A DNA stretch of 64,000 nt from Neoconidiobolus thromboides FSU 785. Lineage: Eukaryota > Fungi > Entomophthoromycota. Positions within the stretch are counted from its first letter, which is position 1; every line of letters starts with the position of its first letter. The translations under genes and the position numbers were made by a program. The notes below the pieces were generated by a model that saw only the letters and a list, made by a program, of their open reading frames with translations, searched no databases and had not been told where the DNA came from. Where the stretch lies: NCBI GenBank assembly GCA_025603075.1, contig MU626277.1, forward strand, positions 65,680 to 129,679, in the 5' to 3' direction. Of the stretch, positions 5,733 to 9,970 are shown in pieces.

Positions 5733-6238
5733 TTCTGACTTGATGAAGTCACTTCCCTATTTGATTGGTTATTGAAGTAGTGAGCTCTCTCAACTCCAAT
5801 CATCAAAGTTGCTTGATTTGAAATTAATTTTTTGGCATTATTTCATTTATTTAATAAAATGTTTTCAGCTGTGCCTATGTATTTAATAATGGGTGTCTTA
5901 ATTTAATTATTATAGGATTTAAAAGCTCCGACTGATTATATCATTGCGGATGTGTTTAATTTTTTACTATTACTTTGAATAATGCTGAATCCAGACTTAT
6001 ATTATAAACTAAAATACAATTTTATCTGATAAGCAATGATGTTTTTAAAGCATGAGATTTCATTTCAGTATAATATTAGATGAACTTTAAAACTGATTGA
6101 ATTAGATTAAAATGCAAGATAATCTATTATACAATCAAACTCATGATATCATAATCTGAAAATTCACTCAATTGATAATTTAACTTATTAATAAAACTAA
6201 CAGAAAACTAATACTTGCTAAGATTTTATTTCAAAAAT

Positions 6239-7615
6239 TTAAAGTCCTAAACGACGTAAATAAGCATCACGTTCGGTAAAAGTGTAAACAATACGAGTTT
6301 TTGCATATCCGTTAAACTCAGAAGCAGCACAACTAGTATAAGCACCCATATTATCACAATAGATCCAATCGTTGACATCAAGCTCAGGTAAAAGACAGTT
6401 TTTATTAATTACGTCTAAACTATCACAAGTTGGGCCCCAGATACTACTTTCAAAATTATAAGCATGTTCAAGTTCAGGGAAATCTTGGAAAAAGATACCA
6501 GACTTCATAAGCACTTTTGGATAGATCACTTGGTGATCAAACATGATACAATTGAAACTACCATAAACACCATCGTTTATATAGTACATATAAGAGGGAT
6601 GATCTGCAACACTTATTTTTGAGTTTTCAAACCCTTTTGGTCCCTCATCATCAGAAGAAGCATCACGTGGAACAACACGACGAGAAGTAACATTGCAGGC
6701 AATTACAAAAGCAGTAGTAACAAAGTAACGTCCTGGCTCAGAGATAAGCTCTAGCCCTCCTTCAGGGAAGTATCTTTTAAGACTTTTGTCAACAACCTCT
6801 GCAATTCCTTTTAACAAATCGGAATTTTGTTGATCATTGGAGCCTGGGAACCCACCACCGATATCTAAAAGTGTAGGTTTAAATCCAAATTCAGCAGCTT
6901 GGTCAAACACAACTCTAGCTCTTGAAATAGCATCACGATAAGAGTCTGGATCATGGCATCCACTACCAACATGGAAACTTACACCAATTAATTCAAGGCC
7001 AAGTTCATGAGCAAGGCTAACAAGCTGATAGCTATTAGAAAGAGAAGCACCAAATTTAACACCAAATTGACACATGGATTTGGAGTCATCAGTCAAGATA
7101 CGTAAAACAACCTGAGCATTTGGATGGGCCATTTTGATTTTGCGAAGTTCATCAGCATTGTCAAAAGTCATACGTCGAACGTTTACTGAAGCGGCAAAAC
7201 GAATGTGACTCATTGGTTTACAAGGGTTGGCGTAGATAATACGGGATGGATCAACGCCAAGATTCAAAACAGTTTGAATTTCAGTCTTACTTGCACAATC
7301 AAAGCCAGTACCAAGCGAAGCTAAAAGTCTTAAAACTTCTGGATCAGGATTACATTTGATGGCAAAGTATGGCTTAATAGTGGGAAAATTGTATTCCCAT
7401 TTAACAAGTTGACGATAAACTTCACCAAGATCACCTACCATAAAAGCATCATCTGAAGTGTTCTCGATGGCAGCAAGTTCTTGTTTAATGGTCTCGAAAA
7501 CAGGGGTTGCACCAATTGAGGATGATACCAAGGGAGTCTTGATAGGGTTGAATTTGGAAAAGTGCTTATTGATAGGCTCGGTAGCCTTAATAGGATGAGA
7601 AAATACTTCCAACAT
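6239..7615 (-). CDS. SPE1: Ornithine decarboxylase (intronless CDS, 458 aa)
   Basis: PYFAIKCNPD (PLP lysine), GFDCASK, FHVGSG, LLDIGGGF, EPGRYF, WGPTCDSLD (catalytic Cys) and GAYT motifs are all intact. Confidence 0.97.
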   Translation of the reverse strand: MLEVFSHPIKATEPINKHFSKFNPIKTPLVSSSIGATPVFETIKQELAAIENTSDDAFMVGDLGEVYRQLVKWEYNFPTIKPYFAIKCNPDPEVLRLLASLGTGFDCASKTEIQTVLNLGVDPSRIIYANPCKPMSHIRFAASVNVRRMTFDNADELRKIKMAHPNAQVVLRILTDDSKSMCQFGVKFGASLSNSYQLVSLAHELGLELIGVSFHVGSGCHDPDSYRDAISRARVVFDQAAEFGFKPTLLDIGGGFPGSNDQQNSDLLKGIAEVVDKSLKRYFPEGGLELISEPGRYFVTTAFVIACNVTSRRVVPRDASSDDEGPKGFENSKISVADHPSYMYYINDGVYGSFNCIMFDHQVIYPKVLMKSGIFFQDFPELEHAYNFESSIWGPTCDSLDVINKNCLLPELDVNDWIYCDNMGAYTSCAASEFNGYAKTRIVYTFTERDAYLRRLGL

Positions 7616-7788
7616 AATAAGATTAATGATTAAAGTTGATTGGTAATATTACCCAGGCGAACTTAAAGGAGAGCTGTAAAAGAAAGCTTCTGGACTCAAA
7701 ACTGCAAATTAAAGGTCCACTAAAATAAAAGTGGTCTAAGACTGTAAAGGAATGTAGTTATAAACTAAATCGGTTTCAAGCTAACGAC

Positions 7789-7872
7789 CTATAAGTTCCA
7801 AGGTGGTTGAGCTGAAAAGACTCGGTAAAGTTTGTGTACTGGGTTTGACGAAAACGTGTTGATAAATAGCAC
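7789..7872 (-). promoter_or_regulatory. AUG-less upstream coding region (uCC-type uORF) in the ODC 5' leader, ending ...KLYRVFSAQPPWNL*
   Basis: Minus-strand frame 7872-7789 reads VLFINTFSSNPVHKLYRVFSAQPPWNL*. There is no ATG between 7980 and the ODC ATG at 7615. The PPW ending matches the uCC described for ODC/antizyme-inhibitor mRNAs. Confidence 0.75.
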
Positions 7873-7973
7873 TTACCCTTAGTTGGAAAAGTGCTCACAA
7901 TCAAAAAAAGTAAGGTAAAAGAATGATAATAAGATTCTAAAAACTTAATTGAAATTTAAAGAAAAATTGGATC

Positions 7974-7981
7974 TATTTATA
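7974..7981 (-). promoter_or_regulatory. Putative TATA box of the ODC gene
   Basis: TATAAATA on the minus strand, about 360 nt upstream of the ODC ATG and just upstream of the ATG-free leader. Confidence 0.4.
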
Positions 7982-9970
7982 CTGTTTGGTCAAACTTAAT
8001 TTGAAATTTAGTTTGAAAATTAATGCAATGATTCAAGAAAAGAGAAGCTTAAAAACAGTCCAATTTTCAATTTAATACTTTTTGCTTAAAAATGATTTAA
8101 AGTGGAGTTTTTATACCCTGCTCAATAAAAGATTGTGCAATTCTGAGTTACTAAATTTAGCGCCTTATTTAGCTATTCCTTATCACAAAATAACATCAAT
8201 AAAAGCATAATTTATTATACTGACATGAGAAACTAAATAATTAAAGTTGAACTATTCGTAATCATGAAAAGTAAGGATAGAAGTTAAAATGACATAGTTT
8301 AATACTGGTTTAACATTAAGGTTAATAAAACATTTCAGATATCTATATTGTATCAATTATATTATATAATAAATTTCATACTATACTATGTTATATTGAT
8401 AATAAGATAGGTTAATTGCCATAATGCTAAAGTAGTGTAGTGAATACATATTAATCAAGTTGTTAAGTAATAAAGAATAATTGAATAATCAGATTAAATA
8501 CGTATGATAATGTATAAATAGATATAATATACAAATCTAAAGTATTTATCAGATATAATACTCTTATCAACAACAATGGAATCAAGAATTAACAAATCAA
8601 AGCTTTTTCAAATGAACATATCAATGAGTACAAATTATACAATCGAGCTTTTTATAAATAAAATACTATAGTTTTGTTTAGGTATCATCTGATACGAGGG
8701 TTAAAGTGCAAACATTTAGATTATTTTTTAAAATAAATATTGCTATAGTAATGTGATTTAACTATAGTAAATTTACAATGGATTGTTTGGTTTACACGAT
8801 TAAATAAGATGCTCTAAAAAAAGCTTACCATAATCGGGAAATTAAAAATTCTATTCATCTAGACAATATATACACGTATTATTCAAAAATATAAACTATA
8901 CTTACATTAATATTGATCTGATATTAGCTTATGAATTTTTATTAGTTCTCTCTTACACTATAAATTTAATCAGATTAGATTAATTAAAATAAAAATATGG
9001 TAAACAGGCTGCACCACACCCAATACAATTCATTTAACTCGGTCTTTAACTGGCTATTATTTTGTAATGCAATTATCCTATTTGTATAAAATAAATTTCT
9101 AAATATTTATTACTAATAATGATCTAAAATTCAAATTAATGTTTCATTAAAAGCGTGAAAATCGAAGTAAGCCCTATCAACCTTTAAGTCAATCCTTTAA
9201 ACCATAAAAAATTGTGGAGGTTCTATTACTATTTCATGTTATCCTATCCTGAGATTATTATTTGAAAATAGCACTCAAGCCATGCTTAAAATGAAGTTTA
9301 CTTTATAAATATGGCCATTATTCAATTTATTCGGCTTAATTATTGAAAATAATATTACTCTTGGCCAAAACTCCCAATTGATGTTGGTATAAACTACTGC
9401 TGATTTAGCATATTGTAAGGAAAAAGTGTAAAAATGAGAGATCAGATTCATAAAATTACTGATAGAGTTGAATCAATAAAGCAAAGAGTTGATTTATATA
9501 AGTTTGTAAACAAACTCCTTATTATGAATTATTTCATTTTTATTAAAATTTCAGGAAGCTCAAACAAATCATGATTACTTAGGAGCTCGCTTATTATGAG
9601 TTGCTTGATTTTTATTCTTAATTTTAGAAAATATTATTTTTGAATGGTTTGGCTTAATTATAAATTTATCATTCTTAAACCGAAAATTAACACTATTAAT
9701 AGTGAGACATAAAGAGCTATAAATATTAAAACATGATTAAAAAATTCAATTTAAGCCGAGGATTGGTAACCTATATATCAAACGAAGTAAAATAGCAATA
9801 ATTACTTAGAATATAGATGCCAAAAAGTATTATTTATTAATAGTGGTCCCATAGCTTTCTAAAAAGAAATGATGCAAGGCTTTTAGTCATATCTTTAGTC
9901 TAGCATATAGCGCTACTAATTGATATCTTTTACATTTCTAAAAAGGCTTAAAACAAGCATATTTATTAAT

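Follow-up and report, generated by a model that had tools for sequence, protein, structure and literature searches.

Homologs of ornithine decarboxylase (ODC) in animals, Pezizomycotina, Basidiomycota and Zygomycota carry uCCs, or upstream conserved coding regions (PMC2811004). Two adjacent prolines are found near the C-terminus in almost all of them, and their putative start codons include AUU, UUG and ACG (PMC2811004). The shortest have 'as few as 22 codons in Zygomycota', a class that according to this source has been described since 2008, and the animal and fungal groups are considered to be of independent origin (PMC2811004).

The mode of action has been worked out for AZIN1, where polyamines hamper the eIF5A-assisted synthesis of PPW and cause the ribosome to pause; scanning ribosomes then queue back to the weak start codon, initiate there more often, and the main ORF is repressed (PMC9082881, PMC11550727, PMC10855120, PMC8705083). 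The C-terminal motif in animals is PPWxxPS-stop (PMC10855120).

Here we describe the ODC leader in a stretch of 64,000 nt from Neoconidiobolus thromboides FSU 785, referred to below as the window. An earlier reading made from the letters of this DNA (the sequence-only reading) had proposed that the leader contains an AUG-less, near-cognate-initiated PPW uCC. This core claim has gained strong comparative support from the presence of PPW frames in 9/13 leaders, the codons kept in the transcript contig L001 and the length of 22 codons. Overall, we put the probability that the window element is a functional polyamine sensor of the uCC family at roughly 0.8, its dependence on polyamines and eIF5A being argued from the family.

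Results

The ODC gene and its transcript

The gene and its transcript occupy the following positions.

6239..7615, minus strand: ODC coding sequence, 458 aa, intronless, with PF02784 and PF00278
6210..8041, minus strand: ODC mRNA, unspliced, 5' end at or upstream of 8041, poly(A) near 6209-6212
8108..8115, minus strand: TATAAAAA box, about 70 nt upstream of the 5' end in run X1

The ODC frame (7615-6239) is intact, and both Pfam domains are carried by the window protein and by all of its relatives. The closest ODCs are those of Entomophthora muscae and of two transcript contigs, with best identities of 62-64%, and the window ODC appears nearest to Entomophthorales ODC.

Transcript evidence came from assembled contigs of four RNA-like runs (X1, X2, X3 and X6), a form of data in which minor isoforms are hidden and 5' ends are imprecise. 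X1 yielded a single contig, 6212-8041, with 0 mismatches and with adapter sequence directly beyond 8041. The X2 contig covers 7590-7969, beyond which weak depth continues to about 8083; X2 also has a loose poly(T) end at 6209, which on the minus strand represents a poly(A) tail. The X3 contig spans 7590-7909, and that of X6, a strain about 97% identical, spans 6218-8137. The contigs are colinear with the genome and none of the four runs shows joints. Depth is zero beyond the bounds of 6212-8041/8137, indicating that the source is mRNA and not contaminating DNA.

Because the X1 contig reaches 8041, the ODC leader is at least 426 nt long, and the TATA at 7981 is itself transcribed and lies inside the leader. 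The sequence-only reading had taken this TATA box for the promoter, with transcription starting just below it; the RNA 5' end instead lies at 8041 or further upstream. The X1 5' end is better matched by the TATAAAAA box at 8115-8108, which is thus the likelier core promoter, a role that we infer from its position. The uCC proposal also needed transcription to start upstream of 7789, and this proved to be the case, as the RNA contigs cover the frame.

The ODC 3' UTR is very short, with AATAAA at 6230-6225 and a poly(A) site about 27-30 nt past the TAA stop. In both X2 and X3 the contigs fall into two variants that differ at 5-6 places within the ODC coding region (6482-6605 and 7316-7435), which suggests that two alleles or strains were present in the samples.

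An ATG-free leader with a PPW frame

Within the window (26.9% G+C) the mean ATG-to-ATG gap is 61 nt. The ATG-free stretch from 8196 to 7615 measures 578 nt and is the longest of the 2087 such gaps on both strands; the ATG-free ODC leader of about 360 nt claimed previously therefore holds, the real stretch being longer. When the leader was shuffled with dinucleotides preserved, the probability of finding no ATG was 0.06 at 426 nt and 0.02 at 522 nt.

The minus-strand frame 7872-7789 begins after a TAA (7875-7873) with GTG 7872, reads VLFINTFSSNPVHKLYRVFSAQPPWNL, and closes at TAG 7791-7789 with the C-terminal end QPPWNL-stop. Its stop lies 173 nt ahead of the ODC ATG at 7615. Frame and distance are exactly those that had been claimed. 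Two features are assigned within it.

7789..7857, minus strand: uCC TFSSNPVHKLYRVFSAQPPWNL, 22 sense codons from ACG 7857 (A at -3) plus TAG 7791-7789
7798..7806, minus strand: PPW codons CCA CCT TGG, predicted site of a polyamine/eIF5A-dependent pause, 57 nt downstream of ACG 7857

Such a frame might be a chance product of an AT-rich leader and have no function, as it is short, lacks an AUG, and CCN-CCN-TGG is found at 3 sites in the whole window. However, the motif arose with a probability of only 0.001-0.004 per shuffled leader (dinucleotide-preserving), whereas a PPW frame is present in 9/13 early-diverging-fungal ODC leaders against 0.6 expected from the shuffles. Furthermore peptide, start codon, spacing and hairpin are all conserved, as detailed below. 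The comparative data effectively refute a chance origin, for which we see a negligible probability.

Conservation of the PPW frame in other fungi

The window was compared with ODC loci from 12 other sources, using leaders of up to 1 kb each. PPW frames were identified in the following leaders, shown with their C-terminal ends.

Window: FSAQPPWNL-stop
L001: FSAQPPWC-stop
L004/L005: YLKPPPWC-stop
Basidiobolus: FPEPPPWLPCSLGLA-stop
Rhizopus (L007) and Mucor (L008): RRGFPPWLS-stop
Thamnocephalis: FSGPPPW...
Mortierella: FRRSPPWLPENQGLV-stop
Rhizophagus: RSPPWQVA-stop

PPW is thus kept across phyla as an amino-acid motif, while its codons vary. The nearest relative, L001, is represented by a transcript contig whose leader of 325 nt encodes ...LFRVFSAQPPWC-stop. 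RVFSAQPPW is identical between L001 and the window, and the four nucleotide differences in this stretch (GCT/GCA, CAA/CAG, CCA/CCT and CCT/CCC) are all synonymous changes at third positions. Elsewhere the two uCC frames differ by offsetting single-codon indels, and the stop stays 1-2 codons past the Trp. Among the four closest taxa, identity at four-fold degenerate sites of the ODC coding sequence is down to 28-45%, a level at which neutral leader sequence should no longer be alignable. The codon-level conservation on which the proposal depended is therefore present in the comparison with L001.

In Rhizophagus irregularis (L013:1789-1985) the uCC is split by a 110-nt GT..AG intron placed between ...GHQ and RSPPWQVA-stop. 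After splicing the frame reads ITELQKQVVKLIIFRGHQRSPPWQVA-stop.

A PPW frame was absent from Entomophthora muscae (3 kb upstream searched), from Dimargaris (2 kb) and from L015, and the same 3 kb and 2 kb of E. muscae and Dimargaris contained no hairpin module; the leader available for L003 is only 155 nt. Since E. muscae and Dimargaris lack the frame, the PPW element is not universal among these fungi. A search of metagenomes with back-translated RVFSAQPPW returned only two GC-rich bacterial contigs, which is as many as chance would yield, and neither has an ODC in its vicinity.

Start region and spacing

An AUC-ACG-type dicodon is located 51-66 nt upstream of the TGG in the PPW-bearing leaders. 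Basidiobolus has the variant AUC-AUC, L004 has AUU-AUC, and the window has AUC-AAC-ACG. The Rhizophagus dicodon is missing from the unspliced leader but present in the spliced form. The second codon of the dicodon always has A at -3 and in five lineages also G at +4, and an AUY-ACG start region is kept in 8 lineages.

Counted from ACG, the uCC has 22 codons in the window, L001, Rhizopus and Mucor. With this count and A at -3, the window frame matches the length reported for the Zygomycota uCC (PMC2811004). ACG 7857, which the sequence-only reading had listed among its candidate starts, is thus well placed, having the same context and length as the Mucorales uCC. The in-frame alternatives are GUG 7872 and AUC 7863. 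The distance from start to PPW is conserved at about 60 nt, or about two ribosome footprints.

A conserved hairpin 5' of the uCC start

Folding of the leader revealed a further element upstream of the start codon.

7868..7895, minus strand: conserved hairpin with stem AGCACUU/AAGUGCU, from folding, directly 5' of the uCC start

The hairpin (7895-7868) has a dG of -12.7 to -16.5 and a z of -3.6, and its 3' edge lies 10 nt 5' of the ACG in the window and about 10-13 nt in most lineages. Its 3' arm includes both GTG 7872 and GTAAGT. Nucleotide conservation between the window and L001 extends 5' of the ACG (GCACTTTT ... AAGTGCTATTT) but is shifted by 2 nt in frame, and this out-of-frame conservation is explained by the folding of the hairpin. 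When the 45 nt before the start region were folded, an equivalent hairpin was obtained in 9/9 leaders, with stems as follows.

Window (7895-7868), L001, L004 and Basidiobolus: GCACUU(UU)/(AA)AAGUGC
Rhizophagus: GCACUU/AGGUGU, G-U variants of the GCACUU stem
Mucorales: GGACUG/CAGUCC
Thamnocephalis: GGACGC/GCGUCC
Mortierella: GCAGGC/GUUUGC

The hairpins map to L001:87-110, L004:2840-2867, L006:2772-2798, L013:1751-1779, L007:1761-1782, L008:1595-1616, L009:1018-1045, L014:1570-1593 and L015 about 50-76. In stability the hairpin ranks in the top 1.7% of 45-nt windows within the leader studied here and in the top 0.4-20% across leaders, giving a Fisher-combined p of 5e-7 for 9 leaders from taxa that are not fully independent. 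All 54/54 cells of the six outer stem pairs are standard pairs, compared with 31-50% when the partner is slid by 1-3 nt. As the register was chosen by hand (MAFFT left the stems out of register), the 54/54 arises partly by construction, and for the pairing only the compensatory changes carry weight; double compensatory changes are seen at 3/6 pairs.

The gap of 10-13 nt between hairpin and ACG is close to the stretch of mRNA that the 40S exit channel accommodates. This agreement suggests that the hairpin may re-form behind the scanning complex and hold it over the weak start.

The hairpin bears on the possibility that the conserved leader blocks act at the RNA or DNA level only, as a protein site, a structure or a promoter, and that the PPW frame is untranslated. 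Conservation upstream of the ACG is indeed partly structural, and translation of the uCC is itself deduced from sequence. The coding region behaves otherwise: the RVFSAQPPW differences from L001 fall only at synonymous third positions, indels comprise whole codons, the stop is kept, and PPW persists across phyla through changing codons. Moreover, the Rhizophagus intron interrupts the element yet leaves the frame intact. Folding of the entire leader gave an unremarkable z of -1.3, and an Rfam scan of 7500-8250 gave no match beyond a plus-strand snoRNA, which was rejected as sub-threshold (E 0.64). We therefore allow a purely RNA- or DNA-level role only a slim chance, and favor a translated uCC.

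The choice of start codon can also be weighed against the hairpin. The uCC could belong to the same family and yet begin at GUG 7872 (27 codons) or AUC 7863 (24 codons). GUG is usually a stronger near-cognate start than ACG, which would favor it here, and GTG-CTA-TTT is identical in the window and L001, with both frames comprising 27 codons from GTG to stop. However, GTG 7872 has T at -3 and sits in the 3' arm of the hairpin, a position that explains its nucleotide conservation without any coding role. No other lineage has a GUG at this position, all of them keeping AUY-ACG or AUY-AUC with A at -3, and it is the count from ACG that gives the published Zygomycota length of 22 codons. Initiation at GUG or AUC is accordingly unlikely in our view, and ACG 7857 is taken as the start in what follows.

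The 3' arm also bears on splicing. It had been proposed that a short intron from GTAAGT 7876 to an AG at 7839 or 7812 joins ATT 7901 to the PPW frame, such that splicing sets both start codon and uORF length. The motifs do exist on the minus strand (GTAAGT 7876-7871, AG 7840-7839 and AG 7813-7812), and intron-split uCCs occur elsewhere, as the Rhizophagus uCC is truly split and L015 has GTGAGT after its ATC-ACG. Joints were nevertheless found in 0/4 RNA runs, the contigs being colinear through 7909-7590. Removal of either implied intron (37 or 64 nt) would take out the conserved start region around the ACG. Additionally, L001 has AAAAGTGC in place of GTAAGT. Because GTG 7872 and GTAAGT both belong to the hairpin arm, their presence is accounted for, and use as a start codon or donor is less likely. 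Splicing at 7876 is not the major form, although a rare isoform is compatible with the contig data; as a switch for start and length it is highly improbable, and the proposal was dropped in favor of the unspliced uCC from ACG 7857.

In L015 the order is hairpin, then AUC-ACG, then GTGAGT directly 3' of the ATC-ACG, which suggests another intron-split uCC.

A second conserved uORF ahead of ODC

Between the uCC and the ODC start codon lies another short frame.

7649..7699, minus strand: second conserved uORF LSPEAFFYSSPLSSPG, from UUG 7699 (G at -3, A at +4), 16 sense codons

It ends in Pro-Gly-stop, with TAA at 7651-7649, 33 nt before the ODC AUG. The corresponding sequences, given from three codons ahead of the UUG, and their stop-to-AUG distances are as follows.

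Window 7708-7649: FAVLSPEAFFYSSPLSSPG-stop, 33 nt
L001 (about 220-283): SAGLNPTAFLFNSPLQSPG-stop, 43 nt
L003 (about 85-139): LTGLNPISFFYSSPLQAPG-stop, 16 nt
E. muscae (L002 about 2918-2981): TAGLNPEAFFYISPLLAPG-stop, 19 nt

The uORF opens with an invariant UUG (context CAGKUUUGA), closes with UAA and is exactly 16 sense codons long in 4/4 taxa. Variable columns number 9, 7 and 16 of 20 at the first, second and third codon positions, and 9/20 residues are invariant in the uORF frame versus 2/19 in the other frames. The uORF is absent from the remaining lineages compared, and on this distribution appears specific to the Entomophthora-related clade. A reading of the block as RNA structure was rejected, since RNAalifold found no consensus (-0.17 kcal/mol).

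The second uORF resembles HOL1 MLLLPS-stop and the PS-stop small uORF of plant AdoMetDC in being short, conserved as a peptide, terminated by Pro-x-stop and located in a polyamine-pathway leader. Those uORFs differ in ending with Pro-Ser-stop, whereas the one described here ends with Pro-Gly-stop, is apparently initiated at UUG and has no sequence similarity to them. A literature search found nothing specific on stalling at Pro-Gly-stop.

In the window only (7616-7699), the second uORF is in frame with ODC and no stop follows its TAA, so that readthrough would produce an N-terminally extended ODC. The spacing in the relatives (43, 19 and 16 nt) is out of frame, and the window arrangement is probably a coincidence.

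Discussion

Comparison with described uCCs

The window element lies in the transcribed 5' leader of an ODC-homolog gene (PF02784 and PF00278; RNA 6212-8041). It has no in-frame AUG, a conserved near-cognate start in good Kozak context, C-terminal amino-acid conservation with two adjacent prolines, and the length of about 22 codons typical of Zygomycota. At the sequence level it thus shows every feature that defines the uCC family of ODC homologs and falls within the 'Zygomycota' group, to which it adds a lineage that could not be sampled in 2008; the published alignment of this group entered our comparison through the review and our own extraction of the Mucor and Rhizopus leaders only. The animal ending PPWxxPS-stop is not shared, as the window has PPWNL-stop, L001 PPWC-stop and the Mucorales PPWLS-stop. 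Two statements of the sequence-only reading consequently need correction. The AZIN1-like pattern 'F-x-A-x-P-P-W' that it named differs from the animal motif PPWxxPS-stop given in the literature, and the element, which was presented as new, belongs to a class already described for Zygomycota since 2008.

The closest match is the Mucorales uCC. Both are found in an AUG-free ODC leader, have 22 codons from an ACG with A at -3 and a preceding AUC, place the Trp at codon 20 with two residues and a stop after PPW, and carry a hairpin about 10-13 nt 5' of the ACG. They differ in the peptide before PPW (YRVFSAQ in the window, SLFDRRGF in the Mucorales) and in the stem (GCACUU/AAGUGC versus GGACUG/CAGUCC). 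In addition, the window host stands near Entomophthorales, and the second conserved uORF is found only in its clade. Apart from PPW and the start region the two peptides have little in common, and the case for homology with the Mucorales uCC over convergence rests on this common architecture.

The vertebrate AZIN1 uCC shares with the window element a non-AUG start, PPW near the C-terminus and a location in the leader of an ODC homolog. In both, the distance from start to pause site corresponds to a whole number of ribosome lengths, the expected basis for queuing. In contrast to the window element, the AZIN1 uCC starts with AUU instead of ACG, has about 50 codons instead of 22, spans roughly 90 nt instead of about 60 nt from start to pause, and ends in PS-stop; it is from the AZIN1 case only that the function is known.

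Proposed mechanism

Transcription of the leader, its depletion of AUG and the conservation of frame, start, spacing and hairpin were observed directly. From these we infer a sequence of events that includes translation of the uCC, a pause that depends on polyamines and eIF5A, and roles for the hairpin and second uORF. Most scanning 43S complexes would pass the weak ACG 7857 and continue to the ODC AUG, and the minority that initiates at ACG would translate 22 codons. At high levels of free polyamines the eIF5A-assisted formation of the Pro-Pro-Trp bonds (7806-7798) would fail, the ribosome would pause, and scanning ribosomes would queue behind it. A queued 43S would then be parked over the ACG, because the start is located about 57-63 nt upstream, roughly two ribosome footprints. 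The parked complex would allow more initiation on the uCC, closing the leader and lowering ODC synthesis. Spacing of about 60 nt from start to pause, maintained over very deep divergence, is what the queuing model would predict.

The hairpin at 7895-7868 belongs to the conserved module, and its probable contribution is to hold or slow scanning complexes when they reach the weak start. The second uORF (7699-7649), with its Pro-Gly-stop end, could pose another obstacle 33 nt ahead of the ODC AUG.

Extending this to the whole group, we hypothesize that the 'zygomycete' ODC uCC is more than a peptide and represents an RNA device with three parts, conserved across Mucoromycota and Zoopagomycota. 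A Kozak-optimal ACG would be flanked by a hairpin ending about 10 nt on its 5' side and by a PPW pause site two ribosome lengths downstream. The hairpin would serve as a backstop, re-forming in the wake of the scanning 40S and keeping it on the weak start. Fungi of the Entomophthora-related clade would possess, in the second UUG/Pro-Gly-stop uORF, an additional and independent sensor, acting by stalling or at termination, that lies 16-43 nt ahead of the ODC AUG. This extended proposal is tentative, and we give it less than even odds.

Distribution and significance

The Mucorales are the lineage of the published "Zygomycota" group that was confirmed here, and the uCC now reaches beyond them to an Entomophthorales relative, Basidiobolus, Zoopagales, Mortierellomycotina and Glomeromycotina. 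Such a distribution suggests that the uCC arose long ago among early-diverging fungi. Three aspects seem to go beyond what has been published for this class, namely the range of taxa, the conserved hairpin and the second uORF; we found no mention of the latter two in review-level literature, through which the 2008 alignment is known to us.

The conserved spacing of about 60 nt constitutes natural comparative support for a queuing model that was derived from mammalian AZIN1, and the hairpin and the Pro-Gly-stop uORF are concrete, testable additions to that model. All of these leader elements are missed by annotation pipelines.

Rhizopus, and not Mucor, has a second PPW frame (L007:1900-1990, ...KIWTTPPWYIKIF...), and 14 nt separate its end from the ODC ATG.
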